Assembly (NCBI GenBank): GCA_048013815.1
Contig: CM106586.1
Coordinates: 11,656,001-11,720,000 of the forward strand
Direction of reading: 5' to 3'
DNA: 64,000 nucleotides
DNA from: Setoptus koraiensis
Lineage: Eukaryota > Animalia > Arthropoda
This document shows, piece after piece, positions 33,108 through 62,090 of this stretch; within the stretch, counting starts at the first letter, position 1, and each line of letters opens with the position of its first letter. The translations under genes and the position numbers were made by a program. Under the pieces are notes generated by a model. It did no database searches and was not told where the DNA came from. It saw only the letters and a list, made by a program, of their open reading frames with translations.

Positions 33108-34400
<1,293 letters not shown>

Positions 34401-42514: not shown

Positions 42515-43432
42515 ATGCCAAAGTACGCAAGTGCTACTTCGATTAAAAAAGAAAAAAATCAAGATCTCCCCGAAGATTTCCAGCTACTATTAACACCCGC
42601 ATTCTCAGCCATGTCAAAAATAACAGATCACCTATTTTTGACAGGTGTGGGTGGCATGACAAAAGAAAATTTAAAAAAAAATCATATTGACTACGTGGTG
42701 AATGCAACTACAGAGGCTCCATTCTGGGAGGACATTGATTCGCTCAGGGTATCTGTTGAGGACGACAGCAGCGCCAATATTTATCCTTATTTCGATCCTG
42801 TTGTTGATAGAATACAAGATGTAATAAATCGCAATGGCCACGTGCTCGTTCATTGTTTGGCTGGTGTTAGTAGATCCGCCTCAATTGTTATCGCTTGGCT
42901 AATGAAATATAAGAGAATGGATCTCAAGACCGCCTTCAATTATTGTTACAATCAGAGGCCCGTTATCAGGCCCAACAACGGTTTTCTAAATCAATTAATA
43001 GTATACGAAAAACATTTATTCAATAGTAACTCAATACAAATGATAGAGGTTGATGTAGACGGAACACTTATAACAGTGCCTCAATTTTTTATAGAGGAAC
43101 ACCCCAAATTAGTAATGCTAGAAGTGCTAAGGGTAAAAGCTGCGGCCAATATTGGTGAACCAATAACAAATGAACAACAAGAAAAACGACAAGACAAACT
43201 GTCAGAAAATAGTAGATCATCGCGATCACAAGCTAGTCAGAAGATCAGCGCGTCGGAAGTGACTAAAAGAATGCATCAGGCTGAAAAGTCGACTTCAAAG
43301 ATTAAACCGGATCAGGGAAGTCAGGCAGTCGCCGACGATGCCCAGACTAGGCAAACGCAAACCCAGTATGAGTTGTCACGATTCAATAAGTCATGGAAAA
43401 AGCCCACTTCGAAGAAAGCTATAAAAAGATGA
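42515..43432 (+). CDS. Atypical dual-specificity phosphatase (DUSP14/18/21-like) with basic C-terminal tail
   Basis: SKITDHLFL, VSVED, VLVHCLAGVSRSAS, RPVIRPNNGFLNQL. Catalytic CX5R intact. Confidence 0.95.
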   Translation: MPKYASATSIKKEKNQDLPEDFQLLLTPAFSAMSKITDHLFLTGVGGMTKENLKKNHIDYVVNATTEAPFWEDIDSLRVSVEDDSSANIYPYFDPVVDRIQDVINRNGHVLVHCLAGVSRSASIVIAWLMKYKRMDLKTAFNYCYNQRPVIRPNNGFLNQLIVYEKHLFNSNSIQMIEVDVDGTLITVPQFFIEEHPKLVMLEVLRVKAAANIGEPITNEQQEKRQDKLSENSRSSRSQASQKISASEVTKRMHQAEKSTSKIKPDQGSQAVADDAQTRQTQTQYELSRFNKSWKKPTSKKAIKR

Positions 43433-43677
43433 TTGGATAACTATTATAAAAGATAAATCAATAATAGTCATGACTATTTCGTAGCATACGCTCCCAGAAC
43501 TGTTTCTCATGAACGTATACTCATCCTGCTCATCATCACTCTTTTTGGCGATGCCTCTTTACTCTTTTGAACTAATATACAAATCGACAAAAAATTTAGA
43601 CTCTGTCAGTATAATTTTCTGACCAACAAAACCACCATGTTATCTTGATTAATCTAAATCTAAAAAGTACGAGTTGT

Positions 43678-44637
43678 TTACTCACTATCTTGCTCAGGCG
43701 GCCGCCTCTTTTTATTTGTTAATAGATCACCGATAATTTCGGCCGTACGGGCCACCTGTATGGCGGCCGGAGGTGCCTGCCTTGGCAAATCAAGATATTT
43801 CATAGGCCTAGTTTTTCTACCTGCTGTCAACATGCCACCTATGATCGCTTGTGTTTTCGCCATTTGTGCGATTGTCTTTCTCGTGGTTCCCCCTATCTGG
43901 ACCCTGTAGTTATCGTTCTTCGATAAAAGTGATTCGTCGCTCTTGAGTGATTTGCTGGACACACTGGGATCGCTCTCTACACTTTTAGATTCACTCTTAT
44001 CTAGACGATGTTCCAGCCTTCCTCCACGTTGTTGATTCCCTTTTAGTCGCCCTGTCGAGCTAGTTTGCGGTGGTTTGTTTTGCAGCGATTTTGAAAGTCG
44101 TTCAATCGTCAATTGCACATTCGATTGTGAGTCGTCAAATGGCCAGGTGGAATGAGGCGATTTAGGTTCGCTTGAGACTTGTTTCGCGGCTACAAATTTC
44201 GGTCTCATGGGAAATTCGGACAATTTGTAAATTATTGGTGACACGTGATCGGGCTTAATTGATTTTTTACCAATATCCAATGAAAATTGCTTCCCATTGG
44301 ATTTTCGTGAAAAATTTTCTCGTTTTACATGTGATTCTGGCTGCTGGGGGTATATCTCAACCTTGTTGGCCGCCAGCTGGGACTTGCTGAGGGTTTTTGT
44401 GGCGCCTATATAACCTAAGGTATCCTTATTTACATCAAGACCATAGTTCTGTTCAATTCTCTTGCGGAAGCAGCAGCATTGTCGTCGCTTACAACAGCAG
44501 TATATAAATATTATACTAATAGCTGTTAGAAAAGTAGCTGCTATCAACAAATACTCTTGCCAGCCAAATTGTGATGGAGTCTTCAATATATTGTATGCCT
44601 GTTGGGGAGATGTTGATGGTTTCTCATTCGCTACCAT
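43678..44637 (-). CDS. Orphan single-pass membrane protein with juxtamembrane Cys cluster
   Basis: TM YLLIAATFLTAISIIFIY followed by CCCKRRQCCCFRKR, then a basic S/K/Q tail. 319 aa. Confidence 0.82.
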   Translation of the reverse strand: MVANEKPSTSPQQAYNILKTPSQFGWQEYLLIAATFLTAISIIFIYCCCKRRQCCCFRKRIEQNYGLDVNKDTLGYIGATKTLSKSQLAANKVEIYPQQPESHVKRENFSRKSNGKQFSLDIGKKSIKPDHVSPIIYKLSEFPMRPKFVAAKQVSSEPKSPHSTWPFDDSQSNVQLTIERLSKSLQNKPPQTSSTGRLKGNQQRGGRLEHRLDKSESKSVESDPSVSSKSLKSDESLLSKNDNYRVQIGGTTRKTIAQMAKTQAIIGGMLTAGRKTRPMKYLDLPRQAPPAAIQVARTAEIIGDLLTNKKRRPPEQDSE

Positions 44638-45149
44638 TCATGAAAAGCCGACAGGATTTAAAACGAAGGATGTGTTTACCTTGCGCGATCGATTGATGGC
44701 TTTGATGCAGTACAATATTAAGAGTGAATTACCTTTACCAGAATTGATGACAGACACTAGATCTATCATTCAAGAGCTCATTGAAACTTTTACAATATGG
44801 AATCAGCGCGTGATCCTTTTGATCTTTGATTTTTGTACAATAGTTGCACTACAAATACACAATTTCGGTCATACAGTAAAGTGTAGTAAAGTATAATTTT
44901 CTTGTTGGGGCATGCACGAGATCGGGCAGCTAGGAGCATCTTGGAATACAGTAGTGTATGACATAGAGTCTTTAGGGAAATACAGACTTTGCAGATGCGG
45001 TTGTGTTAGTAGAATGACTGAATACAACTATCACCACAGAGAAGAACAGAACCGGTTAGTTTCTGTTTCTGTGAGATCCAAACGCTTGATTTTTCAGATT
45101 TTTCGGTTTTTTTTCAGTCAAGGCGATCAAGGGAGAGGCAGCCAAGAAA

Positions 45150-45641
45150 ATGGATGATTTAAAGAATGCGTTTTATGATAAGTTGGCAACCACTACGTTT
45201 ATAGGATTTGGATCTTGGATAATCAACGATTTGTGGAACAAATACGTCGGGAGTCCAGCGGACGAATATGTGACAGAAAAAGCTAGGAGGGAAAAGTTTG
45301 CACTACAAATGCGCAAAGCAGAATCGGGTCGAACACAGCTAATGGCCTTACAGAACACTATGCCTTACATGTTGAAAGCAACTAAAATGAATTGTTGCAA
45401 ACCAGTCTGTTCTTTCTACTCATTTGTTAGCTACGAAGCGCTACTTCTTATCCTTTTGCAGCTAGCAATCCTCTATTTGGTGATTCTCAGTTTTTTTTGC
45501 GAAAAGAAGAGAATTAAAAGCTATCAAAAAGAAAAGACAGCAACAATCAGCGGTAAGGACAGTCAATCAACTGTGAAAAAACCAGTGCGAGTTATAATCG
45601 GCTCGAAATCAAGAATTGGAGTTTGTGAGCGATCAAAATAA
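45150..45641 (+). CDS. Orphan membrane protein, 163 aa
   Basis: ATG ORF with TM ALLLILLQLAILYLVILSFFC and a basic tail. Confidence 0.65.
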   Translation: MDDLKNAFYDKLATTTFIGFGSWIINDLWNKYVGSPADEYVTEKARREKFALQMRKAESGRTQLMALQNTMPYMLKATKMNCCKPVCSFYSFVSYEALLLILLQLAILYLVILSFFCEKKRIKSYQKEKTATISGKDSQSTVKKPVRVIIGSKSRIGVCERSK

Positions 45642-46908
45642 AGAAGACCTACCTCTGATCCAATCTGCCTTCTAGGTTGAAATCTCAGTTCTTCCTGTTT
45701 TATCAGTTTTTGTCAACCACAATCTCTTATTTTGTGTGATCTTGTTTTTCATGAGATTCAAAACTCAAATATCGGCATCGATTCATGAACATTCAACCAA
45801 AAAGTAGAGGGCAGCTGAGGCGTTTGGATCAGACCATGTTTCACTCAAAAAATGCATTGATTATACCATAGTAAGATAGAACTGCCGGGAGTGATAGGCT
45901 GGAGATGCGGAAAGAGATATCAGGAAGATACTTCTGATCCGAGCAGACGGCCCAGAAACGATGAAGTTCGGCGTCCAGTCTGTGTTTTTTACCTTTATCC
46001 CTATCACTATATCATGATAGAAACTTGATGTTGTGAACGGGTTGCGTTGTCAATCAACTTTTTTTTCCGAAGTTCTGACCAGGGAGAACCAAACCGGTTG
46101 TTAAAACTACTCAGATTCGGTTTCTATAAGATCAAAGCGTTGGATTTCTCGGTATCTTTAGTTTCTACCAGTCAAAATACGTGATTAGGAGGATAGCATC
46201 TCGGAGAAAGACCTCCCAGGTCCAAAGAGGAGCGCACTGTGAGGACACTATTCCACCCGAAAATCCACAAATCAACCTCCTCACTGGACTTCTCGTTGAA
46301 TCATCGTTGTTGTCAGAGAATTGGTGGAAAAATACTTAATTTTTCGGTTTTTTTAACAGAAAAGGTTAAAATAAGGTGTTTTAAGTAGAAAAAAATAGGG
46401 CTCTAGAGACATGTCTCGTTAAGTCTGGCCCTAATACGAAGTTTCAGAGTTTTTTCCATCAACAGAAAAGTTTCGGTAACTAACCGATTCGATTCTCCAA
46501 AGTTATGACACATAGTTCAAGTATCGTATTTACTTGACCAGTATAACCGAACGAGCCTGTTCGAGTGATCAGGCTCGTTAAATAGACTCGTATATACGCA
46601 GATGAACTCCTGATGAGCTGAGAAGAGGCTATTGATTGTAAAATTCGTGGGCAATGATTGTAAACATAATGAACAATGAACGGTATGATCAGAGGAGTCA
46701 ATTAATTGTGTTAAATTGAATTCAGTACACAAAAATATCCAGTACAATTGTCTAGCAGTACACAAAGTACACAAACAGTTTGATGAAAACAATACAAAAA
46801 TAGTACATAAAACACTGAATATACTCGGTGGATCTTCCATTTATTGGTTCATATTATTTTCTTTCGTAGAACCTGGTCACCTATAAATCTAAGCCAGAGC
46901 CACTGAGA

Positions 46909-47088
46909 ATGAGCCAGATAGCACGGCAAGATCTATCTACTGAAGTCGCCCCCAGGCCGTTTAGATGTCCAGGATGCGAAGAATGTGATTGTGCGCCGGC
47001 TTCCGATTTGTTGGTGAGCAACTTTGTGATTATGGGCTTCCTCGCTATAGCAATAATATCGATCTACATAGCGAAACTTAGAATGTGA
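46909..47088 (+). CDS. 59-aa Cys-motif membrane microprotein, below the ORF-track cutoff
   Basis: MSQIARQDLSTEVAPRPFRCPGCEECDCAPASDLLVSNFVIMGFLAIAIISIYIAKLRM*. ctataaat at 46881. Confidence 0.65.
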   Translation: MSQIARQDLSTEVAPRPFRCPGCEECDCAPASDLLVSNFVIMGFLAIAIISIYIAKLRM

Positions 47089-47510
47089 TGATGACGATCT
47101 TACGCTAGACACGGAAGGCCAGCATAAAGCTAAATTAGGTCAGTTCATGAGCCAGTGGTCAGTGCACCACAATGGAAAATCTCGTTCTCGAACTTAGAGA
47201 TCGATCAACTTAGAGATGAAACTAAGGAGAAATGTTCAAATTCGGATGCTCGCTGCTTCAGACTAGGCAAAAACAACTTTCGAACGAAATTGGAATCAGA
47301 TATATAAATCATGCAACTATGTAGTAGATTCAGGTAGCGAAGATATTTAGACAGATCTGATTAGTCTCATTATAAATTAATTGATTTAGAACACTTATAC
47401 TATGAGCATATATCAGATCATTATCATTAAAAGCTTCTTCCGTGAATGTTTATTGTCTCGAAAAGACTATACATGTATTACATGTTCTACATTGTTGTTG
47501 ATGAGCGCCC

Positions 47511-49529
47511 TTAATTTGCTTGATTAGGAGTGTGGTGGCCGAGAAAAGTGTATTCTATTGCGTTTTCCATATTGTTGATGACGATCACTTTCAGACCCGA
47601 TCTGTCAAATTCGATGCTTCTCATATTCACCCAACACCTTTGTGTCTCATCAAACATTTCTACTTTGTTGAACGGCGTCTGACCATTATAACCACCAACA
47701 ACAATTATTCTGTTGTCCACTAAGGCTGCACTGAATGTCGAGCGACTGCTCTTCATTTGACTGTGCAATGTCCATTGTCTGGTGCTGAAACTGTATTGTT
47801 CCACTGAAGACAATCTCTCTGTTCCGTTGTTTCCACCGATCGACAATAGATTACCATGATATAATAACATGGTAAAACTGGTTCTAGGTGACGTCATAGA
47901 CTCAATGAAGGTCCACGTTTTATCTTGTGCATTGTAGAACTCAACAGAGGATTCAATAACTTGATCGTTTAAGCCACCGGCGATGTAAATTGTTTGGTTG
48001 TATACACAAGCTGACGCGTCAGATCTTGACACGTTCATTGGAGCTACTGGGTGCCAAATATTTTGCTGTCGGTCGTATTTCTCCACACTACGCATCCTTT
48101 GCAGGCCATTGTGGCCTCCCATAGCGTACAAGTGACCCTGGATACTGGCCGTAGATACGTAGCATCGGGCCTCGCGCATAGAGGCCTTCTGTTGACACTG
48201 GCCGGTCGATGGATTGAAAACAAACAATTCGTTGAGAATTTCTGCGCCGTCAGTGCCGCCGCATATATACAATATTTTATCTATGATCTCGATGCCGTGG
48301 TAGGCCAGAGATATTGTCATTTTGTGTCTTATCTTAAACCACAAATTACAATTGATGTCGTAACTTTCCATCATGTTTGAAGGTACGCCCGATTTCCAAC
48401 CGCCCAGAGCCAGCAAAACTCCCCTTGGTATTCTCGGTCGCACTTGTTTTGGTGTTGACGCACACGGCAACGAGTAACCGTCACGAAATATCTCCGATTC
48501 GAGCAAATAATCGCGGTGATTTCTATCTAGCAATGCCAATTGTTGTTGGGCGAATCTGTCCTGTTTTATCAGTGGATCCTTCCAGATGATTCTGTCGCTA
48601 AACTCTGGTCCCAAACGCAACCGGGCAAATCGGATACAGGGCAGCAGTTTTGTGACAAAGCTTTTGCGTTCATTGAAGTCATAATGGCACCATCGTCTAA
48701 TGGCGTACCAAACCGTTTCCTCTTGATCAACGTTCAGTCTGTCATTAGATAGAAGCAATTCAAAATGTTCCAATGGCATGGAGGGTAGGTCATCGTTCAG
48801 TTCGAGTATATTTTTGAAATTGAATTTAATAATGTGCCAGGCATGCCTATGGAGACTGTGGTTATATTTGATTCCAATGTGATAATATTTAATACAGTTA
48901 TCCAATGTTAAATGCTCAATCAAGAATGTGCAACATGCCCGAATAACATCGGTCATTTGATAGAAATCGGCCGTTTGCAGCACCTCCCAGATGCCTCGTT
49001 CATCTGTTTGTAGATAGCCAGTATAAGAGCAATCGACGAGAATTCTGAGAACGCGACTATTGAATTGTGGCAACAGAACAGCTTTTAGGCTAGATTTATT
49101 TGGCGTGTATTTTTTGTCTACTAATGGTGGTGCACTTTTGATCTTGTTAGCCACTTCGATGCTGCCACTGCTCGTACCAGCATAAGGACCGTTGGCAGTT
49201 CCAGAAATCTTGTCGTTTTTATCTAGACTGGCCGTTTTTTCTTGCTGCTGTGACGCTGATGAATCATGCATAAATTCAGGAGGAACTTGCTTATGTATAA
49301 ATTCGCCGTGGTTTGCTATGTAATTAGCGAGACTCTCGCTTAAAGCGGAAACCACCTGACAATGGACGAGTTCCCGACCGCCATCCTCGCTCATCAGAAT
49401 GGTGTCAACAAGGGTTCCACTCTTTTTTAAATGCTGCAAAGCTGCCTTCCTATTCTTGTAGATGTCCCAATCGAAGGCGCATCGTTGATGCTGAGGCTTC
49501 ACAGCTACTACTGGGAGCGCCTCATCCAT
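47511..49529 (-). CDS. KLHL10: Kelch-like protein 10 (BTB-BACK-6xKelch)
   Basis: PRIPRGVLLALGGW..G.P.N, AYHG, RCYVS, RSDASA, RSTFSAALVD..IVVGGYNG and final RSGL follow the KLHL10 repeat signatures. Intronless. Confidence 0.9.
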   Translation of the reverse strand: MDEALPVVAVKPQHQRCAFDWDIYKNRKAALQHLKKSGTLVDTILMSEDGGRELVHCQVVSALSESLANYIANHGEFIHKQVPPEFMHDSSASQQQEKTASLDKNDKISGTANGPYAGTSSGSIEVANKIKSAPPLVDKKYTPNKSSLKAVLLPQFNSRVLRILVDCSYTGYLQTDERGIWEVLQTADFYQMTDVIRACCTFLIEHLTLDNCIKYYHIGIKYNHSLHRHAWHIIKFNFKNILELNDDLPSMPLEHFELLLSNDRLNVDQEETVWYAIRRWCHYDFNERKSFVTKLLPCIRFARLRLGPEFSDRIIWKDPLIKQDRFAQQQLALLDRNHRDYLLESEIFRDGYSLPCASTPKQVRPRIPRGVLLALGGWKSGVPSNMMESYDINCNLWFKIRHKMTISLAYHGIEIIDKILYICGGTDGAEILNELFVFNPSTGQCQQKASMREARCYVSTASIQGHLYAMGGHNGLQRMRSVEKYDRQQNIWHPVAPMNVSRSDASACVYNQTIYIAGGLNDQVIESSVEFYNAQDKTWTFIESMTSPRTSFTMLLYHGNLLSIGGNNGTERLSSVEQYSFSTRQWTLHSQMKSSRSTFSAALVDNRIIVVGGYNGQTPFNKVEMFDETQRCWVNMRSIEFDRSGLKVIVINNMENAIEYTFLGHHTPNQAN

Positions 49530-49794
49530 GACTAATAAAATATCAAATATATATTGAAATATGAGTGTATATACAAATTTTCAATTCTTCTTAGTACAGC
49601 GGAAATGAACTTGTTTGACAATTATTTCCAGTTGCACAACAGCGGCAAAAATTTAAAGATCGTTTGGACGTTCACTCTCGTGATCAGCAGAAAACAAAAG
49701 TTGCCTACTATACATTAATCTAGTGTAACTATACATGTATTAATCATACAGCCGGTCGCTCAGATTCCCATGCGTTTCTAGCCTAAGGTAATCA

Positions 49795-50172
49795 ATGATT
49801 ACTAATCATCAGCATGTCAAGATCGCAAAAGTCAATGTCTTATCCCTAGTCTCGGTCATTCGATATTCATCAACGGAGATGGAAGAGCCAGAAAATACAA
49901 GCAATGTTTCGAGGACAGGGGACAGGACACAGGTGAATCAGGTGACTTACGGGATTCTCATTGGCATTTTGGCCGTAGCGGACATGATACTCATTTGGGC
50001 GATCACCTATTCGTTAGTACACTTCGAGAGGCAAAGCTATCAGATATTGAAGACGACTACAAACTTTAACACTAGCAACACTTCAACCACGAAGAGTGAA
50101 GTTAAGAATACCGTAATCAATTCAGATGGACTGATAAAGACATCAGATTTACAAGTGACCCGCAAGGTCTAA
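49795..50172 (+). CDS. Orphan single-pass membrane protein
   Basis: TM VTYGILIGILAVADMILIWAITYSLV and T/S/K tail. Alternative ATG at M-EEPEN. Confidence 0.6.
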   Translation: MITNHQHVKIAKVNVLSLVSVIRYSSTEMEEPENTSNVSRTGDRTQVNQVTYGILIGILAVADMILIWAITYSLVHFERQSYQILKTTTNFNTSNTSTTKSEVKNTVINSDGLIKTSDLQVTRKV

Positions 50173-50399
50173 GGAAGATGATTATTTTTCATGTTTAGTG
50201 TACACAATTAAAAGACGTATCAATTTCTGATGAGGTCCTCGACAATAATTTGAATTCTCACGCATTCACTATTTGAAATTACTGCATCACAAAGTTCATC
50301 ATGATAGACACTTCTGAATTGTCCAAGTGTTCCTCAATGATAAATAATGTTCAATTGATTACAAAAACTATCATTGTCTGAGAAGCATTAAACTTGCAT

Positions 50400-50687
50400 T
50401 TAAACGGGCGCTTTGAGTCGCAGCTCAACCGGAGCCAAAGTTCCACAGCTTCGTTCTTCTTTTTTTAGAATTTGATCAATGGTGGGCAATTTTCCGAGTG
50501 TATCATCGTCGGTGCTATTCTTGATGAGGGAATCTCGAATAATCTCTTCGTCTATTTCCCCCACTACCTTTTTAGTGTTGCAGTATGTCCTACTCAAAAA
50601 CCATATTCCCACAGCCGTTCCCACGACCATGATAGACATAAGTAGTATTACGAATATTATTCCGACCGGTTCTTGAGAGCCATTCAT
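50400..50687 (-). CDS. Orphan type III single-pass membrane protein, about 95 aa
   Basis: MNGSQEP followed by TM VGIIFVILLMSIMVVGTAVGIWFL. First ATG at 50687. Confidence 0.65.
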   Translation of the reverse strand: MNGSQEPVGIIFVILLMSIMVVGTAVGIWFLSRTYCNTKKVVGEIDEEIIRDSLIKNSTDDDTLGKLPTIDQILKKEERSCGTLAPVELRLKAPV

Positions 50688-51417
50688 CGTTTTCTGCGAC
50701 AATAGAACAATAAAAGACCTAGAATTAAGATACTTGCGATTGACGTATGTTCTTCAGTGAATGAATTACATAATATTGCCTGGTATTAATGGTAGCAACA
50801 AGCAGACGCATGATATGCAGAATCAACTATCATGATAAACTCACTTGACTTAATCTCGCGCCCTCATTCAATTAATGTCACAATATCTATTTTATTTTGG
50901 AAAATTTGTGCAATATGACTGGCATAGTTAGTATATCACCGATGATGTGCGCTGTGACCGTCATGTTGAAGCACGTCGAGTAAGTTCGAAAAGATGGGAC
51001 AAAGTTTGTCCGACAAACTGACGATGTTTGAAATGATATTCCATCTTTATTTCTACTTTTCTTGCTACTACTAGATGCCGCTGCTATTGATACTATAGAA
51101 TAAACAATATTGAACCTACTCTCGACATCTCCTCATCCTCTGTTGTATATGCATACGTATCTGAATGAGATTGTGTCTATCAAACGAAGAATGTATAAGG
51201 AGTGTATAATGAATCTATGATTGATATAAATATGATTAGTTCATATAGTTCGCGCGCCCCTCCAAGTCGAATTTGAGGCTCTCTTTCAAGTTGGTCTCGA
51301 ATCCCCTTTCTAACCCATACCCTTTGACCACCAGACCAATATATTAGCTCGTCCATTCGGCGCCCCTCCTTACCGTCTTCTCTGTATACATCGACCATTT
51401 AGACAGCGCCTGGAAGA

Positions 51418-52374
51418 TTAAGCCTCGGCGAGCTCAGCCGCACGCTTATGTGCTGCCTCGATGGCCGCTGCTATTCCGCTGGCCACGTCCGCTTTATCGA
51501 GAACGTGAACGCCATAAATGGCGGCACCGGAGGGAGAGCACACATCGTCACGCAGCTCGCCAGGGTGCTTGCCGGACTCTAGTTGGGTCTGGGCAGCACA
51601 CTGCACTGTCTTGGCGGCAAACTTGAGCGCCATTTGACGCGAAAGGCCCATCTTGAATGCTCCATCGGCCAAGGCGTTTATGAAATAATAAGCAAACGCC
51701 AGTCCTGAGCCACCGATAGCGCAAGCAGCGTCCATTTGACTCTCTGGCACGTACTCCAAGCGGCCAATTGATGATATTAGTGTTCTCAGACAAGGAGACA
51801 ATTTTTTGCTGTCTGGCTCGCAATCTATTGCGCACAAACCGAGGCCATACATGGCGGCTGTATTTATCATGACTCTGTGCTGCTCGATAACATACTTCTC
51901 TGGGTGATCAGGGTTGATTAATGTTTGTTTGATTTGATCCATTGTCGCCCCACTAACCAGCGACAATATGTACAATGGATGACGCATATAGGGCACGTAA
52001 TTAGTGCACAAAGCCGCCGGTCTAGTGCCGCCTGTCTTAAAGCAACGCCTTATGACAGAGCCGTGAACGCAAATAAATATTATGTCGCAATCGTATCGGC
52101 CAAATATGTCGATATTGCGCTTAGTTATGTGGCAACCATAGTTTTTGAAGCTTTCCAAATTTTTCGAAGTTGGTGCCGCTACGTGAATTCTTGTTGCGGC
52201 CACCTTGCCATAGTTTATTAGGCCCTGAACTAGTGCGTCTGCTATTTTTCCAGCGCCGATGATACCAATTTTCGCCTCCTCGGCGGATAGAGCTCCCAAT
52301 TTCCTCGGCTTGCCGCCTGTCTTGCCGGAGGCTCTCTTTGAGCCGCCCGATGATTTATTTGATTTGCTGCTCAT
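51418..52374 (-). CDS. PYCR: Pyrroline-5-carboxylate reductase with basic N-terminal extension
   Basis: IGIIGAGKIA, HRVMINT, ESQMDAACAIGGSG, ALADG..MGLSR, KHPGELRDDVCSPSG. First ATG at 52374. Confidence 0.93.
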   Translation of the reverse strand: MSSKSNKSSGGSKRASGKTGGKPRKLGALSAEEAKIGIIGAGKIADALVQGLINYGKVAATRIHVAAPTSKNLESFKNYGCHITKRNIDIFGRYDCDIIFICVHGSVIRRCFKTGGTRPAALCTNYVPYMRHPLYILSLVSGATMDQIKQTLINPDHPEKYVIEQHRVMINTAAMYGLGLCAIDCEPDSKKLSPCLRTLISSIGRLEYVPESQMDAACAIGGSGLAFAYYFINALADGAFKMGLSRQMALKFAAKTVQCAAQTQLESGKHPGELRDDVCSPSGAAIYGVHVLDKADVASGIAAAIEAAHKRAAELAEA

Positions 52375-53107
52375 AATTTGTTTGCTAATCAACTAATAAT
52401 TTGTGTCTACTAATACTACCTGTTGTTATTTCTTTGCACTTAATACGATATCTTTGTCTGTTATATCTATTATATTGGTCTAAATCGAGTGGTGAAATTT
52501 GCAAGTCTCTGTGGAACCTACTGATATCTATAATTTTATTGTTGCCACTAACAACAGCTCCAATCAATCGAGTGGCGAGTCACTTCGAGTGCGCTCGTAA
52601 CTAACTAACTCAACCTCATAACTATAGGAGGCTGACTATCTCTCTCCCCCTCTATCAAATCGATTTTATTTCCTCATATATTATGTAATACTTGATACTC
52701 GTGGAATAATTATTGCGCGAATACTTCAGCCTGTAGCTAGCTTGATAAAATATTTCCGCGAGGCACTACATGTAACCAAGCAGTTCAACAGATGAGAATG
52801 ATAAAATCTTTATTGTTTATATCTTCACAACTACAGCTAAGTATGAATTGCATCACTATTCAATAGTTGACAAATAAACAAATATTAGTGCTCAGAGGTC
52901 AATCAAATTAAGTCTCCTCAACTGTACTAGATTGTTTTGTACTTTCAAGCACCCTTAGAAGGTTTTTGCTTTCTTACATACTGTGTAATCCTGTGATACT
53001 TAAATTCATTGCAATTGTGACTCAGTCAAATGTCACGATCTCAAATGAGAGAATGACGAAAAGCAAATGAAAGAGATCAAAAAAGAAAGGCCAGACTAAG
53101 ATGTCTA

Positions 53108-53362: not shown

Positions 53363-54148
53363 AGAGAGTTTCTGTTGTTCACGAAAATACGCATCGTACT
53401 TAACCTATTACCTAATACTATCGTGCTTTCCCATATACTCTAATTGTACTAGAGACTCTTTAACGCGCAGAAGGAGAAGGTTAGAGATTGGCATGATAAA
53501 CCATTTCGGTTAACCAAACCGAATGTTTTTTTCTGACTAAAAACTGAAACCGAACCGAAGCCCAAAAATCCGCCGGCTATTGGCTTTCGTGATTCCGGTT
53601 TATTCAATAACCCAGTCAGCAAGATGACCAGGTGATGTGATAACACAGAGAATCAATTATTAAGGACTGACTTGGGGTCGACTACAATCAAGCTGTTACG
53701 AAGTTTTTCTATCTGAGACAGATTCTATGAAAACTCATATGCGCTCTTAATTGGTTGTTTGTATCTTGTTTTCTACCAAATTTTCTTCCAAATATAATCT
53801 ATGATTATCAAGCTATCCTTGGACGAATTCGCTGTCGTTCGCCTACAACAATTAAATTGTTACTTAATGGTAAGTGCAATATGTGAGTAAATACCATCTT
53901 ATAAGAGGTGGGAACATTTTATTTTGCATTGCGTGAAGGCGAGATGTTTCAAAAATTCATTTTCCATCCACTTGCTTTGAGAATGGATTCCTCAACAAAC
54001 TGCAATCATACACTTGCTAGTCCCTCAGTCTAGGGACTGAGGCAGGGAGATCGTGGGTCGGGAAGGTTCTGTTGATTTTCTTCTTACCACACTCCCAAAT
54101 CTCCAGAAAACTGAAGAAAAAGAAAAACTTCAGCTGACGAGAAAAAAG

Positions 54149-54208
54149 TGTGACCAAAATTGTGACCAAAATTGTGACCAATATCGTGACCAATATTGTG
54201 ACCGATCG
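54149..54208 (+). repeat. Five tandem 12-bp units tgtgaccaa(a/t)at
   Basis: tgtgaccaaaat x2, tgtgaccaatat, cgtgaccaatat, tgtgaccgatcg. Confidence 0.95.
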
Positions 54209-54339: not shown

Positions 54340-54620
54340 GATTTTAACCAAGACTGCGCGACTTTTCTCACAATTTTTTCATTTCACCTTATAGTTCGCT
54401 GAAGGAGACGTCGTTTAGAGCCAGTATTAACCTTGTATCTCAGCTCTCTCGAGGTGAAATTGGGCCTCAAAGTTGAAATTCTGAGAGAAGTGGGTGTGTC
54501 TGGTGAACGAAGAACCAGAAACAGAAATAAACCAGATTTCTGGGATAAACTGAGAGGGATCTTTCCAACCATACCCTATTTTCGGAAATCGGAGACGAGA
54601 AATTAAAACACCGTAATTAA
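54340..54620 (+). mobile_element. Repeat family R1, longest colinear copy
   Basis: Colinear with 61830-62090 (gacgtcgtttagag...cctcaaagttgaaattctgaga...cagaaataaaccagatttctgg). Confidence 0.88.
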
Positions 54621-55512
54621 CACGTAAACAGAGAATGTGAATATCAGTGCGAGTCGCACTGTGCGACACGATGATGTAACATCTTATCAAGACTGTCTAT
54701 CACATGTCCGTAATTTTATCATTCAACAGCAGCCGAGCCATAGAGAATAGGGTAATGGAGGTGTGGGGCCATCGGTTGGTGGTGTCCAGACTAACTTGCT
54801 TCCAACAAATATCGGTTGTAAGATATAAGTGAACGAAAAAAAGTGCCACAAATCGGTTATTTCGTTTTCTGTTCTGACGTTCACGATCATTAGATAGTAG
54901 GGAGGTTGCAAACGTAGATCTTCATACTTTTGAGGAGAAATGTCACGATATCGGTTACAATATTAGTCGCACTTTTTTCTTTTTCTTTTGTTTTCAAGAG
55001 ATCTGGAAGACTGGGGCAGAACTAGGCAGTAGCAAATTAACAGCACTGACTGAGAGGTCTGTTGTACAAATTCACTTATTTATCCAGTACAATGAAGCCA
55101 GAATAGATAAAATACAACTTTATGAATGGGCAGAAGGCGTTCAATACTCATGCTGAAAGTATGAAATTGTGCAAGATGACATGCTCAAACCGAAAATGGC
55201 AAAACAAAAAACGAAAGATGAATCATCCAAGATAGTGAACGTTCAAAAACGTCCAAATTATCTATTAATAACTATCTTCCAGTTTTATGAATAAATAAAT
55301 ATCTATAACTTTATGACAAGATCAATTGTGCCAATCGATAATCAACCAAAAGCACATCAATACATGGTCTAATCTGGTTCGATCCGCGTCAGTTGAGACC
55401 AACCACTCTCATTAACTTAATCGGGATAGAACCGATACATGTAACATGCATGCAGTGATAACGCAAACTGACAACTTTTATTACAACTGTGCTCGTGCAT
55501 TAAAGTAGAAGA

Positions 55513-55531
55513 GAGACTTTGACACACAACC
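55513..55531 (+). promoter_or_regulatory. Shared upstream module core gagactttgacacacaacc (also at 56781, 58381, 59580)
   Basis: Exact 19-mer upstream of each A and full-length B gene, preceded by gctcg(t/c)gcat(t/g)aaa..agaagag. Confidence 0.6.
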
Positions 55532-55842
55532 ATTTTAACTTTCACCTGGTGTATTGCAGAACACTTACGTCACGCGCTCAAGTCCATCTGCAACAAACAA
55601 TTCGAGATTTCACATTCACTTCATCAGGCTTCATTATTAATTTGGTGACTTTTACACCACCGACGAGTAAAGAATTGACGTCTCTTGCAAGTTGCTTGTA
55701 TCATCAGTTGCAACAAAAAATCATCCCTCCTATCTACTGAAAACAGCCGGATACAGCAAAAGCGCCCAGGACAATACCAAAGTTATTAATCGAGTCATCT
55801 GCCAGTTTAGGTAGAGTCAAGGGTTCGCCTTGTGCGCTCACG

Positions 55843-56049
55843 ATGGGTGGTATAAATTTATTTGGCGAGCAAAAAAACGACGAAGCATACACACCAGAAC
55901 AAATAGCGTGCTACTCAGAAATTATCACACCGACTGATTGTGGCTGCTTAACTCATATGATCAAGTACATCATGTATATCACGATGGGGGCGAACTTTTT
56001 GTGTTACACGGCGTTATTTTCTATCATTCTGATTAAGGCTCTAAGATGA
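55843..56049 (+). CDS. Array gene A1: 68-aa C-terminal-TM microprotein
   Basis: MGG...CYSEIITPTDCGC...GANFLCYTALFSIILIKALR*. The paralog at 58693 keeps the ATG, Cys residues, TM and stop. Confidence 0.7.
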   Translation: MGGINLFGEQKNDEAYTPEQIACYSEIITPTDCGCLTHMIKYIMYITMGANFLCYTALFSIILIKALR

Positions 56050-56950
56050 GTGAATGTATTGACGAGGCAACGCTCTCAACTATGATCATAGGACTATTTT
56101 ATATCGGGTGAATCAATGATTGGCGTATCTGAATAACATCAGAAAATCTTTATGAATAAAAAGGCTGATGTTCTAATTAGGTAGTGAATTATTCAAGTAT
56201 GCATGTTGTCATGATATGTTGATAAAATTTCTGAGAGGCTAAAATAGAATAGAAATGCTTACATGTATCATGACCAAATTAAGCTGCATTTTTTCTTAAT
56301 TGATGGAACCATATGTTTTGAATGACAAGCTCCACTGAAAGATACGTAATGTCTATATATATTTGCATTAACATTACTTTTATCGTGAATAAAGAGTCAA
56401 TTGATGCAAGGAAAATCAGACTAAAGAGCTCCTCATGTCGGACTTGAACTCAGTTAGTTCCGTGACTATCATTATGACGTCACTATGTCAAAATGAAAAA
56501 CTAACTTCGAGGCATCAGGTGAGTCAGACGATGTCCATCTACCAGTTGGATAATAATCTTAGTTCAATCAAGATTAACAGCACCGTGAAGTTAGACGCAC
56601 ATCAAGTACTTTATTAATCTGTATATCAACGATTGAAATTGGTGAATTAATATCAGAGTAGGTTGATCAGGATTGCATTCTCATCCTCATCAGCTGAATG
56701 AAATTATAAAAGATAACATGCAAATCGGCTGCTTCTATTACGCCCGAGCTCGTGCATGAAAGTAGAAGAGGAAACTGAATGAGACTTTGACACACAACCG
56801 TTCTAACTTTCATTTCTTACATTTGACTTGAAATTGAGGTGGATATCAGAAAATCTCGCACAAATAACAATTGTTTGGTCAGGATTTGTCGAATAATATT
56901 TTTGCATGTTAGTTGACGGAGTGGTTATAATTTATTGAAATTATAGAGCC

Positions 56951-57382
56951 ATGTATCCCCCGAGATGCATCATAGATGAATTCGAGGATAATTATAATTA
57001 TTATTTATTGCAAAATGATTCAATTTTTGTGGGTCGTTATGAAAGATTCAAGGAAAAAATGCATAAGTACGTAACGTACGGGACCGAATGTGATGATAAA
57101 TTGACTGACTGTCTTGAAAAGTCCTTAGATCCCTATTTAGAACATCCCAATATGCGAAGTTCTTGGTCTAAAGGGTACGCTATTATCTTGACGAGTATGA
57201 ACGAAATCAATTGCACCTCGCATTGCAGCACGCAGTGGATCATGATTGCATCTGGTATAATCTTCTTCTTTATTGGTATGGCGTTGATCGCTGTGGTTTC
57301 AACATATTTAGGCAAACGTGGAAAAAAACAAGACGAACTTGCGACTAAGAACGTTCCCACTCGTTTCCCATTCTTTAAGTAG
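56951..57382 (+). CDS. Array gene B1: 143-aa single-pass protein with Cys-containing ectodomain
   Basis: MYPPRC...EF; C..CLE; NCTSHC...W; TM; basic tail. Confidence 0.78.
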   Translation: MYPPRCIIDEFEDNYNYYLLQNDSIFVGRYERFKEKMHKYVTYGTECDDKLTDCLEKSLDPYLEHPNMRSSWSKGYAIILTSMNEINCTSHCSTQWIMIASGIIFFFIGMALIAVVSTYLGKRGKKQDELATKNVPTRFPFFK

Positions 57383-57598
57383 TGGCAGCAACAATTTTGA
57401 CGAAAAATCATCAGTTAGAAGCTCTTTTAAGACTTGAAGCAATATATGAGTGTCAACCATGAGATCAACTCGATCGAAACTCTTTGTCTCTGCATAGAAT
57501 AAAACGTAACCACCTTAATTTTTTGAACACTCTTGGTGTGCTAGCTCATTCATCATAGTGACCGATAGAGCTAACTTGATTATCAAACAGATCCATGT

Positions 57599-57826
57599 AT
57601 GTTCGAAAATATCTCGGGGAAAATGAACGAAAGTAATTGCTCCTGGCATTGCAGAACGCACTGGATCATGATTGCAGTGGGTATGGTCTTCCTCTTCATT
57701 GGTATCGCGATGATCTGTGTGGTTTCAACATTTTTAGGCAAAGGTAGAAAAAAACGAGGTGAAATTGCGACTAAAAACGTTCCCACTCGTTTCCCATTCT
57801 TTAAGGAGTGGCAGCAACAATTTTGA
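57599..57826 (+). CDS. Array gene B2: 75-aa truncated duplicate of the B1 C-terminal half
   Basis: NCSWHC..W, TM and ATKNVPTRFPFFK shared with B1. The B1 stop TAG is GAG here, adding EWQQQF. Confidence 0.55.
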   Translation: MFENISGKMNESNCSWHCRTHWIMIAVGMVFLFIGIAMICVVSTFLGKGRKKRGEIATKNVPTRFPFFKEWQQQF

Positions 57827-57901
57827 CGAAAAATCATCAGTTAGAAGCCCTTTTAAGACTTGAAGCAATATATGAATGTCAACCATGAGATCAACTCGAT
57901 T

Positions 57902-57905
<4 letters not shown>

Positions 57906-57935
<30 letters not shown>
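57906..57935. repeat. (CT)15 microsatellite
   Basis: Direct reading. The paralogous site near 57480 has only ctctttgtctct. Confidence 0.97.
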
Positions 57936-57937
<2 letters not shown>

Positions 57938-58692
57938 GTAGAATAAAACGTAACCACCTTAACTTTTTGAACACCCTTAGTGTGCTAGATCATTCATCAT
58001 GGTGACAGATAGAGATAAGTTAATTATCAAACTGTTCCATGTATGTAGCCGACTAAGAAAAAAAACAAAGGACAATGAGCATTGAACTAAAGTGACACGC
58101 CGATCCAGAAAAATGCTATGTACCTGTATCTTGATGCCACTTGTTCGAGCATGTTGTCAAGAGAGCTTGCGATGTGATATTTCAAATATGAAGAAATGGG
58201 TCATTATCACTCAAACACACGAGTGGAATCGGTGAACTCGTATCAAAATGAGTTGATTAGAATCGCATTTGCACTCCCATCAGCTTTATCGGGATAGAAC
58301 AGATACATGTAAAATGCATGCAGTGGTAATGCAAATCTACAGTTTCTATTATATCAGTGCTCGCGCATGAAAAAAGAAGAGAGACTTTGACACACAACCA
58401 TTTTAACTTTCACCTGGTGTATTGCAGAACACTTACGTCACGCGCTCAAGTCCATCTGCAACAAACAATTCGAGATTACATTTTTCGCTTCATCAGGCTT
58501 CCTAGTCGATATAGCAACTTTCACAACACAGATGGGCAGAAAATCAACATCGCTTTCAAGTTGCTTGTATCATATATCGCTGCAACAGAAAATTCAATTC
58601 AGATACAACAAAAGCACGAAGGACAATATCAGAGTTATTAATTGAGTCACCAACAGTCTAACATACAATCAAGCTGTCGCCTTGCATACACC

Positions 58693-58851
58693 ATGGGCGA
58701 TATTACGGGAACAAAATGCTACGCGGAACTGATTAGCCCGACTGACTGTGGGTGTGAGATACGATATCTGTTTAGGTATATCATGTTTGGAGCGAACTTT
58801 TTGTGTTACACGGCGTTGTTTTATATCATTCTGATTAAGGCTCTGAGATGA
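58693..58851 (+). CDS. Array gene A2: 52-aa C-terminal-TM microprotein
   Basis: MGDITGTKCYAELISPTDCGCEIRYLFRYIMFGANFLCYTALFYIILIKALR*. Confidence 0.68.
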   Translation: MGDITGTKCYAELISPTDCGCEIRYLFRYIMFGANFLCYTALFYIILIKALR

Positions 58852-59770
58852 GTGAATGTATTGACAAGGCAACGCTCTCAACTATGATCATAGGACAATT
58901 TTCAATTGGATGAATTTAATGATTGGCATATCTGAATAACATCGGAAAACCACTATGAATAATAAGGCTGATGTTCTAATTAGGTAGTGAATTATTCAAG
59001 TATGCATGTTGTCATGATATGTTGATAAAATTTCGGACAGAAGTCAATCTAATAAAAATGCTCACATGTATCATGACCAAATTTCCATCATTTCTTGATT
59101 GATGGAACCATATGTTTTGAATGACAAGCTTCACTGAAAGATACGTAATGTCTATATATATTTGCATTAACATTACTTTTATCGTGAATAAAGAGTCAAT
59201 TGATGCAAGGAAAATCAGACTAAAGAGCTCCTCATGTCGGACTTGAACTCAGTTAGTTCCGTGACTATCATTATGACGTCACTATGTCAAAATGAAAAAC
59301 TAACTTCGAGGCATCAGGTGAGTCAGACGATGTCCATCTACCAGTTGGATAATAATCTTAGTTCAATCAAGATTAACAGCACCGTGAAGTCAGACGCACA
59401 TCAAGTACTTTATCAATCTGTATATCAACGATTGAAATTGGTGAATTAATATCAGAGTAAGTTGATCAGGATTGCATTCTCATCCTCATCAGCTGAATGA
59501 AATTATAAAAGATAACATGCAAATCGGCTGCTTCTATTACGCCCGAGCTCGTGCATGAAAGTAGAAGAGGAAACTGAATGAGACTTTGACACACAACCAT
59601 TCTAACTTTCATTTCTTACATTTGACTTGAAATTGAGGCGAATATCAGAACATATCGCACAAACAGCAATTGTTTGGTCAGGATTCGTCGAATAATATTC
59701 TCGCGTGGTAATCGAAGGAATGGTTATTATATATTGAAATTATAGATAACAACACACCTGTAAAACGCTC

Positions 59771-59855
59771 ACACACAAAGACACATAATGACACACAGAG
59801 ACACATAAAGACACACAAAGACACACACACGGAGAAAGAGAGAGAGAGAGAGAGA
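59771..59855. repeat. Five 10-bp acaca(c/t)a..g units plus (AC)n and (GA)n immediately 5' of the B3 ATG
   Basis: Absent at the paralogous B1 position (ttatagagccatg). Confidence 0.9.
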
Positions 59856-59858
59856 ATC

Positions 59859-60266
59859 ATGTTCCCTCCTGAATGCTTAAAAATGGAGTTCGATAGGATT
59901 CAGGCCCGGCCGAATGATAACCCTCACTTTGATCCAAATTGGTGCGATGCTTATGGATGTTCTATAGTGAATAAAGACATGAGCGATGCACAAATATTAA
60001 GTCGGACGGAATTCTTGCGGGAATGTTACGAGGAAATTCTTCCGCTCTTGGGACTAGAACAGGCAAAACGGACTTTCACAGAAATTAATAAATTCAATTG
60101 CGACTCGCATTGCAGCTCGAGCTGGACCCTAGATGCTTTGGTTGTTTTCTTATTCTTTATTGGTATAGCGATGATCATTCTTGTTTCAATGTTTTTGGAC
60201 AAACGTAGAGTAATGCTAAACGGATCCGAGGAAAAAAAGTCTCGATCCCATTCTCCTAAGCGCTAG
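59859..60266 (+). CDS. Array gene B3: 135-aa single-pass protein, ectodomain strongly diverged from B1
   Basis: MFPPEC...EF; ECYE; NCDSHC...W; TM FLFFIGIAMIILVS. Confidence 0.78.
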   Translation: MFPPECLKMEFDRIQARPNDNPHFDPNWCDAYGCSIVNKDMSDAQILSRTEFLRECYEEILPLLGLEQAKRTFTEINKFNCDSHCSSSWTLDALVVFLFFIGIAMIILVSMFLDKRRVMLNGSEEKKSRSHSPKR

Positions 60267-61178
60267 CAATTTTGAAGAAAAAAATCACCAGTTCGAAGCA
60301 CTCTCGAGGCTCGATCCAATATAAATGTCAATTATGAGATCAACTCGATCGAAACTCTTCTTCTTTGCACAGAATAAACCTTATTCATCTTAACTTTTGG
60401 AGCACCCTTAGTGTGCTAGACACATACCGGTATTAACACATATTGACACATACCGATGCATCAATAACCGTGCACTCAAGTCCATCTAACGATTTTATTT
60501 CTCGCGTCATTTCTGATTATCAATCAATTATAAGCAGCCGGTGGATGTATCCCGAAGAGATAGTTTGTATGATGATGGCAGACACCTCTTCGATTCCGAC
60601 TTGTTGTGTTTTTCGAGATCGATCTAAGATCCGAACTTTTCTAGTGATACAAGCGAATCGAATTTCAAGTGAAACTGCAGCCTCTTGAGTATCCTGTTTT
60701 TATACCGGTCTTAGAAACAAAATTATATCGAATGACTCGAGCAGTAACGACAACCTAATGTGGTAGCTTGATGATTGGTTGGTTTCATCTAAGACAATGT
60801 TTTAATCAGATCGTTCATATTTATCAAGGGCACATTAATGATAATTATCAAGTGACTGGTATTTATTATCCTTTCAGAGAGGTGTATTTTTCCTATGTGC
60901 TATCTCACAATCGATTTCTTCATCGCAAGGCGTGGGATCCATCAATGGAAGTGGATGTTTCTTGGTCAGAGTTCTTGAAGTCTCATTTACAGGTGCGTGT
61001 ACGGCATCTTCTATAATAATTTTCTATTGGTTGTGCATATTAAATTGATAATGTTTTGAAGTGTGATCAAAAGGAATTGAAAGGAAAAAAATGATTAGAG
61101 TCCAATAAGTGACATGCTGCAAATAATAAAAAAATACAAAATGCATTGAACATCTAATCTCTGTTTCGTGCTTCGCAT

Positions 61179-61829: not shown

Positions 61830-62090
61830 TCTCACTATTTTTTTGTTGTAGTTCACTAAAGAAGACGTCGTTTAGAGTCGAAATTATCCTTATATCTCAG
61901 CTCTCTCGAGTTGAAACAGGGCCTCAAAGTTGAAATTCTGAGAAAAGTGGGCGTGTCTGGTCAACGAAAAACTAGAAACAGAAATAAACCAGATTTCTGG
62001 TTCCATCCGAGAGAGACCTTTTCAGCCATATCCTATTTTCAAGAATCGAAGACCAAAAATAAAAACACTCTAAAATGAGACAACCCCTTA
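61830..62090 (+). mobile_element. Repeat family R1 copy
   Basis: Colinear with 54365-54620 and, for the second half, 26146-26270. Confidence 0.88.

Follow-up and report, generated by a model that had tools for sequence, protein, structure and literature searches.

The A-B array and its gene products

The window, a stretch of 64,000 nucleotides of Setoptus koraiensis DNA (contig CM106586.1), contains a tandem array of two kinds of small genes, designated A and B. The alternating ABAB arrangement proposed in the first-pass annotation is real, and its order is A1, B1, partial B2, A2, B3. The features are as follows.

55404-55610, plus strand: A1 upstream cassette, with a 32-nt module (55513-55544), the exact 19-mer (55513-531) and an Inr-like start placed by inference near 55580
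55843-56049, plus strand: A1 coding sequence, 68 aa; AATAAA at 56155
56299-56839, plus strand: copy 1 of the near-identical core tract, whose partner is 59098-59638; spans the intergenic spacer and the putative B promoter cassette
56781-56812, plus strand: B1 copy of the shared module; probable transcription start at 56848 (atatcAgaa)
56951-57382, plus strand: B1 coding sequence, 143 aa; AATAAA at 57498
57623-58046, plus strand: B2, a partial tandem copy of 426 bp; source 57197-57602 of the B1 unit; ORF 57599-57826
58272-58478, plus strand: A2 upstream cassette; module at 58381-58412
58693-58851, plus strand: A2 coding sequence, 52 aa, counted from the ATG that corresponds by homology to the start of A1; register fixed by a repeat family
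59098-59638, plus strand: near-identical core tract, copy 2, with the B3 module (59580-59611) inside, followed by a probable start at 59647
59771-59858, plus strand: microsatellite block, (ACACACAAAG)n followed by (GA)n, within the B3 leader and flanked by a conserved 'attatag' and the ATG
59859-60266, plus strand: B3 coding sequence, 135 aa, architecture as B1; AATAAA at 60373
60440-60560, plus strand: claimed decayed third A; unsupported, a 16-nt match only

Two elements of the original description were not confirmed. B2 is not an array unit, but a tandem duplicate of B1's 3′ half that has no promoter cassette. It reproduces the juxtamembrane region, transmembrane (TM) segment, tail and 3′ flank of B1 at 85.8% identity (BLAST), with dN of 0.20 versus dS of 0.14, and is probably a dead fragment. 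The supposed third A comes down to one match (60472-60487 versus 55574-55589) with an E-value of 0.2, out of repeat register.

Might the duplication itself be an artefact, in which two divergent haplotypes of a single A-B locus were joined in tandem by the assembly? The units do belong to a like length class and their core is identical. On the other hand, short-read contigs from other runs, carrying SNPs relative to the window, cross the unit junction (X1, 58084-58404; X2, 57944-58153), and read depth continues through 58015-58376. In addition, the sequence upstream of A2 is non-homologous to that upstream of A1, and in X1 the depth of the shared core is about twice that of the unit-specific parts. 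We consider an assembly artefact extremely unlikely.

Gene A encodes a protein with a hydrophilic N-terminus, a conserved core (CY.E.I.PTDCGC in A1) and a TM segment at the extreme C-terminus. The best 19-residue hydrophobic stretch occupies residues 46-64 of 68 in A1 and 30-48 of 52 in A2, leaving 4 residues before the stop. The sole TM segment thus falls among the last 30 or so residues, and hydrophobicity gives no signal peptide (no hydrophobic N-terminus), so that A looks like a tail-anchored protein, at least as far as its sequence goes. In that case its variable N-terminal domain is probably cytosolic, and calling it an ectodomain, as was done initially, is doubtful. As originally noticed, A1 and A2 differ by N-terminal indels, while the TM end is nearly invariant (1 amino-acid change in 20 codons). 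The two genes have dN of 0.197 and dS of 0.79 (dN/dS 0.25), and within the conserved core and TM segment codons with synonymous changes only outnumber those with replacements, 7 versus 4. Relative to the window, A1 has an in-frame 15-nt deletion in all four sequencing runs compared.

Gene B encodes a single-pass protein; in B1 the TM segment at residues ~97-119 is followed by a basic tail, KRGKK. Neither B1 nor B3 has a signal peptide or a hydrophobic N-terminus; the N-out, C-in topology is predicted from the basic tail by the positive-inside rule alone. Consistent with the initial observation, the N-terminal domains of B1 and B3 are unalignable apart from M(Y/F)PPxC, NCxSHC..W and the TM segment, with four Cys positions retained. 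Homology in the central part of the domain is undetectable in either DNA or protein (z below 1.1), B3 residues 7-76 having no detectable counterpart in B1, and third-position identity there is a random-like 0.34; the 3′ flank adjoining this centre gives z = 57. Between B1 and B3, dN/dS is 0.51 overall, and in the centre dN reaches 0.81 with dS saturated. In the TM region dN (0.36) is about equal to dS (0.37), so that constraint on B is weakly documented. The leader of B1 has no microsatellite block of the kind found in B3.

No relative of either gene was found in any collection searched. The profile HMM of B had no matches among 1.84 billion proteins, word-indexed searches with A returned nothing, Pfam gave nothing above cut-offs, and the best scores against ESM Atlas clusters (0.62 and 0.77) were below the lead threshold. 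Predicted structures had pLDDT of 50-57 and no confident fold. Neither A nor B significantly matched a described family by sequence or profile, whether in Pfam, among PDB-scale folds or among ESM Atlas clusters. Thus, the early remark that no family could be recognised has been borne out by exhaustive search, and A and B are two unnamed, previously unseen small membrane-protein families.

A shared upstream cassette and transcription

The same exact 19-mer precedes all four full genes, as had been pointed out from the start. It begins at 55513, 56781, 58381 and 59580, whereas 0.02 occurrences are expected, and none of 100 shuffled sequences reproduced the finding. The similarity between A and B upstream regions extends over about 85 nt with significance (BLAST E-values of 7e-5 and 1e-7), within an alignable cassette of about 190 nt, which supports the idea of an ancestral 5′ cassette common to both genes.

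Relative to Inr-like sites, the 19-mer occupies positions of about −67 to −49. Contigs of one sequencing run, X4, start at 56847 (B1) and 59647 (B3), that is, at homologous atatcAga sites 36 nt past the module. Given this position, the 19-mer is probably a proximal promoter element; the start site of A1 was placed solely by the 36-nt spacing found in B. Since A and B each have their own copy of the shared cassette, they are probably co-regulated. Downstream, AATAAA is located 106-116 nt past the stop codon in A1, B1 and B3. X4, whose RNA nature is only a guess (probably RNA) and whose depth is 2-7, covers A1 (55783-56146), B1 (56847-57158, identical to the window, and 57100-57283), A2 (58798-58963) and B3 (59921-60171). 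The four predicted transcription units occupy about 47% of the stretch concerned and contain all seven X4 pieces. In this one run no pieces fall in the spacer cores or B2, and X4 coverage is absent over 57653-58738, which takes in most of B2. Sequence words of B1 are present in three samples of the X4 study. In the explanation that we find best, each gene is a separate transcription unit with its own poly(A) signal.

These data also bear on whether A and B are genes at all. They could instead be chance or decaying frames in a duplicated segment that is non-coding or derived from a repeat, and their transcription might be mere noise. Such a view would accommodate homologues being found nowhere, the TM region of B having dN close to dS, dN exceeding dS between B1 and B2, the weak codon-usage signal and the low recognition scores from language models. 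It is difficult to square, however, with homologous frames of 135 and 143 codons remaining open across saturated divergence (P ~1e-3 to 1e-4). The 5.4 kb contain two stop-free runs of at least 135 codons, whereas shuffled sequences average 0.08, and the unrelated centre of B3 is open and in frame (P ~0.002, estimated from local stop frequency). Moreover, the end motifs are conserved despite synonymous changes, replacements are in the minority in the A core and TM segment, indels are in frame, X4 pieces keep to the predicted transcription units, and poly(A) signals are correctly placed. Non-functional frames are therefore very unlikely.

Near-identical tracts beside diverged coding DNA

Divergence along the duplicated unit is uneven, with segment distances ranging from K of 0.009 to 0.41. 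The first-pass annotation had described the spacers as almost identical; this holds for a core of 541 bp only (56299-56839 versus 59098-59638; 5 mismatches, K 0.009, ~99% identity), while the neighbouring non-coding DNA has K of 0.11-0.41, that is, 10-40% differences. Copy 1 of the core ends about 9 nt short of the B1 start site and has no X4 coverage; the tract has no Rfam match and no excess of RNA folding. A second tract, the A1 cassette at 55504-55610, is 97% identical to its A2 copy (K 0.029) between flanks with K of 0.22 and 0.41. The longest identical run is 259 bp, whereas the maximum in permutations was 96 (n=2000). The near-identical tracts are nested, sharply bounded and situated beside coding segments with saturated synonymous sites. 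They are more alike than the rest of the unit beyond chance clustering, and silent divergence outside them (A dS 0.79; B centre saturated) is much greater than the K of 0.009-0.11 inside.

Bounded tracts beside saturated coding DNA fit the second of two explanations offered initially, in which segmental gene conversion bypasses the variable domain. We consider it probable that A1/A2 and B1/B3 are old paralogues whose flanks have been homogenised by interlocus gene conversion, and that the locus represents a two-gene cassette confined to its lineage, in an animal genome with few introns. Under this scenario, the A-B cassette would have been duplicated long ago, as suggested by synonymous divergence of ~0.8 or saturated, and a 426-bp piece of B1 would later have been copied to give B2. 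Segments that were still similar (the TM end of A, the spacer, the B promoter and the A promoter core) may then have undergone repeated interlocus conversion, the 541-bp tract at 99% representing the most recent event. The N-terminal domains outside the tracts may have been too diverged to pair already, or converted copies may have been selected against, and the microsatellite insertion in the B3 leader would mark one tract boundary.

In both genes, the diverged blocks begin and end where the variable N-terminal domain does. Such coincidence is not predicted by a purely chance placement of tracts, and it counts against the conversion reading.

The B centre is not merely old but unrecognisable, while its neighbours have K of ~0.2-0.3; a replaced segment or a focal acceleration may therefore have contributed. 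In its strong form, replacement would mean that the B centre and the A N-terminus were physically replaced by non-homologous sequence between conserved ends (through indels, microsatellite-mediated rearrangement or exchange with a family member at another genomic site), that the copies are not old and that the flanks reflect their true, younger age. The B centres (z <=1.1 for both DNA and protein) next to segments with K of 0.18-0.32, the microsatellite block exactly at the 5′ boundary in B3, and contigs of other runs with the same flanks but different sequence all point in this direction. Nevertheless, a donor sequence was not found within the window, and the 99% core beside flanks differing by 10-40% is left unexplained. 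The A genes, furthermore, are alignable throughout yet have dS of ~0.8, which argues for real age. Overall, we regard wholesale replacement as quite unlikely.

The remaining explanation, diversifying selection in a recognition or interaction system, was the one initially emphasised. Here, selection would keep the N-terminal domains of A and B distinct between copies and strains, conversion or constraint would keep promoters, anchors and spacer alike, and A1/B1 and A2/B3 might form cognate pairs. Divergence indeed peaks in the N-terminal domains of both genes, with the four Cys positions of B kept. There is also in-frame length variation within the species, namely the 15 nt in A1 and a possible 126-nt in-frame skip in B3 (X2/X3). 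Runs X2 and X3 contain only 0.20 of the B1 words. At >=90% likeness they have almost no depth across the N-terminal domain of B1, whereas its flanks are covered; holes in contig coverage prove nothing. At 55822, 59750 and 60268/60299, X2/X3 contigs also run out of conserved flanks into sequence absent from the window. By the very dN/dS test proposed along with the claim, however, diversifying selection is not indicated, since A has a ratio of 0.25 and that of B does not exceed 1, although only two full copies per gene (A1/A2, B1/B3) are available to compare and the pairwise test is weak where synonymous sites saturate, as in the B centre. Silent sites are saturated as well, and the near-random third positions of the B centre imply that the excess of divergence is not limited to amino-acid-changing sites. 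Exposure of the variable domains is likewise uncertain, given the predicted cytosolic N-terminal domain of A and the N-out orientation of B that follows from the positive-inside rule only, without a signal peptide; homologues and a confident fold are lacking. With dN/dS not exceeding 1 and spacer identity explained by conversion, the claim of a recognition system is unsupported, and we judge this explanation unlikely.

Thus, for a near-identical spacer beside unalignable coding DNA, conversion between old copies fits better than a proven fast-evolving recognition system. Our best guess is that A and B are co-expressed small membrane proteins acting together. A more specific proposal, to which we give little credence, is that they constitute a co-regulated cognate membrane pair, involved in self/partner recognition or toxin-antidote-like in the germline. 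Selection against conversion would then maintain variable domains that differ between A1/B1 and A2/B3 and are hyper-divergent among strains, and the 19-mer would tie their expression together.

Significance and comparison with known systems

If the conversion reading is true, the array is a small and clear-cut case of a duplicated gene pair divided up between conversion and divergence. It would then also illustrate that coding DNA more divergent than a spacer does not alone mean positive selection, and it would add two small membrane-protein families whose shared, putative promoter element is sharply defined. Were the variable domains both hypervariable among strains and exposed, this very small animal genome would harbour a compact candidate for a recognition system.

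A resembles tail-anchored micro-proteins in its size (52-68 aa), in lacking a signal peptide and in its one hydrophobic segment, which stops 4 residues short of the end, but it has no sequence kinship to any known tail-anchored family. Cone-snail toxins and sea-urchin Sp185/333 proteins, which are secreted and have conserved signal peptides, combine conserved 5′ parts with a hypervariable mature part; Sp185/333 genes are reported to have adjacent microsatellites, and conotoxins to show raised silent-site rates in the variable part. The array shares with them the conserved flank beside a hypervariable part, the adjacent microsatellite and the raised silent-site divergence, but A and B are membrane-anchored, lack a signal peptide and have only two copies each here.

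Parallels also exist among tandem duplicates. In the primate L/M opsins, gene conversion is combined with selection against homogenisation (PMC3213168; theory in PMC3924837), and in gibbon L/M genes the mostly intronic placement of conversion tracts has left exons more diverged than introns (PMC3213168). As in our array, non-coding DNA of tandem paralogues is more alike than the functionally distinct coding DNA, and tracts lie mostly outside coding sequence. In contrast, the divergent opsin exons still align well and differ at a few tuning sites, whereas the diverged blocks of the array are saturated or unalignable, and its converted DNA is intergenic spacer and promoter, not intron. Among arthropods, islands of divergence are reported to persist under gene conversion in GOT1 paralogues of the copepod Tigriopus californicus (PMC3728101). 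Both cases are mosaic paralogues in which converted stretches alternate with resistant divergent islands, but GOT1 is a conserved enzyme with clear homologues, while the array genes are orphans and their islands comprise whole N-terminal domains.

Anatomy of a duplicated gene pair

Our results indicate that two orphan genes, A and B, each encoding a small membrane protein and probably co-regulated, are present at this locus as a duplicated pair. The array reads A1, B1, B2, A2 and B3, as delimited with an ORF list and a repeat finder:

Components of the array and its flanks
55843-56049: A1 coding sequence, 68 aa
56951-57382: B1 coding sequence, 143 aa
57599-57826: B2 ORF, within a 426-bp segment that repeats 57197-57602 in tandem
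58693-58851: A2 coding sequence, 52 aa when read from the ATG that corresponds in register to the A1 start
59859-60266: B3 coding sequence, 135 aa
54389-54611 and 61846-62068: direct repeats of 223 bp, outside the array

The B2 copy retains the B1 juxtamembrane motif, transmembrane (TM) segment, tail and 3′ flank at 85.8% identity and is devoid of the upstream cassette. Searching the window with all five proteins (tblastn) returned no further A or B members, and the decayed third A proposed in the first-pass annotation came down to a single 16-nt match, out of register and not significant (E 0.2). The direct repeats were rejected as a component of the array, since they belong to a dispersed repeat that the window carries at 54340-54611, 61846-62068, ~25905-26248 and ~1406-1510 (~100-220 bp, 81-89% identity). 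Two of these copies, in the same orientation, flank the array on either side, and the repeat is probably a small non-autonomous transposon. A 12-nt minisatellite, AAAATTGTGACC, lies immediately upstream of the array in five copies (54144-54203).

Tandem units of this kind might have arisen from stitched haplotypes, an assembly artefact that the first-pass annotation had itself raised. This origin is unlikely: contigs from sequencing runs carrying SNPs relative to the window cross the unit junction, the sequence upstream of A1 is unrelated to that upstream of A2, and the depth of one run, X1, is approximately doubled over the core shared by the two units.

The window as a whole is animal DNA with ~38% G+C and tightly spaced long intronless ORFs. 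Those with Pfam or PDB matches, at 33108-52392, encode GAPDH (extended by 70 aa at its N-terminus), two Ser/Thr kinases, a BTB-BACK-Kelch protein, a dual-specificity phosphatase and P5C reductase; among or near them are single-pass membrane ORFs without an assigned family (28475-29155, 43678-44637, 45150-45641 and 49795-50172). Farther away, some 8-10 kb at 13480-23480 are nearly free of G on the plus strand (GC skew −0.66 to −0.99), contain poly-C and A/C-rich tandem repeats and adjoin a scaffold gap of 500 N (~12840-13340). Its appearance suggests an artefact of sequencing or assembly, or else a very odd satellite.

Orphan proteins and evidence for their expression

Protein A has a hydrophilic N-terminus, starting with MG in both copies, a core conserved between the copies (CY.E.I.PTDCGC) and one hydrophobic segment ending four residues before the stop. 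Such an architecture would be tail-anchored, with the variable N-terminal part facing the cytosol, so that the term ectodomain, applied earlier to this part of A, is doubtful. Protein B has no signal peptide; a basic tail lies directly behind its strong TM segment, from which the well-established positive-inside rule predicts an N-out orientation. Four Cys positions align between B1 and B3. AlphaFold2 models are largely helical and too uncertain for a fold search (pLDDT 49.7 for B1 and 57.4 for B3).

That no family could be recognized was borne out by every search. For the five ORFs, Pfam yielded sub-threshold noise alone, word-indexed searches with the A alignment and with B1 and A1 singly returned no match, an exhaustive HMMER search of 1.84 billion representatives with the B profile returned none, and best scores in the ESM Atlas did not exceed 0.77 for B1 and A1. 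Since an exact look-up found none of ten window proteins in the protein collections, proteins of this genome are missing from the databases, and the lack of a match means the lack of a relative in other organisms.

Are these ORFs genuine genes? Two stop-free runs of at least 135 codons occur in the region, against a shuffle mean of 0.08. The centre of B3, unrelated to that of B1, stays in frame and free of stops from one conserved end to the other (P ~0.002, estimated from stop frequency), and M(Y/F)PPxC at the B N-terminus is preserved despite synonymous changes. In the conserved core and TM segment of A, seven codons differ synonymously only and four by replacement, and in all four runs compared A1 differs from the window in length by 15 nt, in frame. 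Codon usage favours frame 0 for both B1 and B3, by small margins. Coverage in runs X1-X3, which appear to be DNA, extends across the whole stretch. The fourth, X4, comes from a separate study, has a depth of 2-7, and its type, RNA or DNA, is a guess only. All seven X4 pieces fall within four predicted transcription units, with none in the spacer cores or B2; as the units make up ~47% of the stretch, the chance of such placement is ~0.005 by our arithmetic. Two further samples from the same study contain one third of the B1 sequence words. Together, the X4 placement and these samples provide moderate evidence for the expression of A and B.

A shared upstream module

Unrelated as they are in coding sequence, A and B resemble each other in their upstream regions. 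The 19-mer GAGACTTTGACACACAACC occurs exactly at 55513, 56781, 58381 and 59580 (expected 0.02), before A1, B1, A2 and B3, and nowhere else in the 64 kb even at three mismatches. The 32-nt block around it is 94-100% identical across all four copies, the similarity between A and B is significant over ~85 nt (BLAST E 7e-5 and 1e-7), and the alignable cassette spans roughly 190 nt. The proposal of a common upstream module is thus upheld. X4 contigs over B1 and B3 start at homologous positions, 56847 and 59647, 36 nt past the module, at atatcAga, which resembles the arthropod initiator. At equal spacing the A cassettes have gctcAagtc, and their start sites are inferred by analogy with B. AATAAA lies 106-116 nt past the stop codons of A1, B1 and B3. 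The module, the contig starts and these signals suggest that A and B are each transcribed as a unit of their own and have a common proximal promoter element.

Several other readings of the region were rejected. An X4 contig that follows the genome colinearly from 56847 past the ATG, with both ends matched, speaks against trans-splicing of B or a signal-peptide exon farther upstream; minus-strand ORFs across the module do not keep their frames between copies. A metagenome scan for the 19-mer yielded three unrelated contigs, dismissed as chance matches because only a 19-21-mer is shared. A scan for bacterial promoters and terminators, irrelevant to a eukaryote, stayed at background level.

Mosaic divergence, selection and probable gene conversion

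Global alignment of the two units revealed a mosaic.

Divergence between the two units (Jukes-Cantor K by segment)
A distal upstream region: 0.22
A module plus 66 nt: 0.029
A leader, remainder: 0.41
A TM end plus 3′ UTR: 0.11
541-bp core (56299-56839, paired with 59098-59638): 0.009, 5 mismatches
B leader: 0.18
B centre: could not be aligned
B TM: 0.32
B 3′ flank: 0.29

The longest identical run (259 bp) exceeds all 2000 permutations (maximum 96). The reported near-identity of spacers therefore describes one tract and its shoulders, but not non-coding DNA in general. A structured RNA was dropped as the cause of core conservation: Rfam gave nothing across the whole window, and folding of the core is ordinary on both strands (z 0.15 and −1.69). 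X4 coverage of the core is absent. Within the core, at 56533-56592, an X1 contig of depth 105 shows ~11 differences in 60 nt. Compared with window copies that are 99-100% identical, it points to a third, non-homogenized spacer version in that sample, putatively an allele or another copy.

In the N-terminal block, B1 and B3 differ with dN 0.81, dS saturated (not computable) and third-position identity 0.34. Without their end motifs the B centres align at shuffle level (z 0.3-1.1 for DNA, 0.1-0.3 for protein), and the neighbouring 3′ flank aligns at z 57. Values of dN and dS are 0.36 and 0.37 for the TM segment of B1 and B3, 0.20 and 0.14 for B1 and B2, and 0.197 and 0.79 for A1 and A2 (dN/dS 0.25 overall, dS >1 in the N-terminal part). 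With A at this ratio and B saturated, the diversifying selection proposed earlier is not sustained, by a yardstick that the first-pass annotation itself had set. The excess divergence is as strong at silent as at replacement sites, which positive selection on the amino-acid sequence alone could not produce. Either the variable blocks are much older than their homogenized flanks make them look, or they were physically replaced.

A recognition role under diversifying selection, a less likely reading, draws on variant contigs. In X2 and X3, apparently a single data set filed twice, depth almost vanishes at the B1 N-terminal domain while the flanks are covered, and 0.20 of B1 words are present, although holes in contig coverage prove nothing. 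Their contigs leave conserved flanks at 55822, 59750 and 60268/60299 for sequence foreign to the window, and one omits 126 nt inside B3, in frame. An X1 contig joins the B1 flank at 57600 to sequence resembling that after B2 (58040-58066), which hints that B2 varies in copy number and is absent from some haplotypes, or that a divergent B2 flank was placed on that of B1. These contigs are leads to possible allelic or paralogous forms with the same flanks.

The first-pass annotation was thus largely right in what it observed and half right in its interpretation, which offered selection or gene conversion. Gene conversion probably keeps the A and B flanks alike, evolving in concert, and the N-terminal domains are probably old, replaced, or both. 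The A and B gene families are new; the kind of phenomenon is already known. In opsins, conversion tracts are mostly intronic, which leaves the exons more divergent than the introns (PMC3213168; for the underlying theory, PMC3924837), and the A/B locus is similar in that its coding sequence has diverged beyond the adjacent non-coding DNA.
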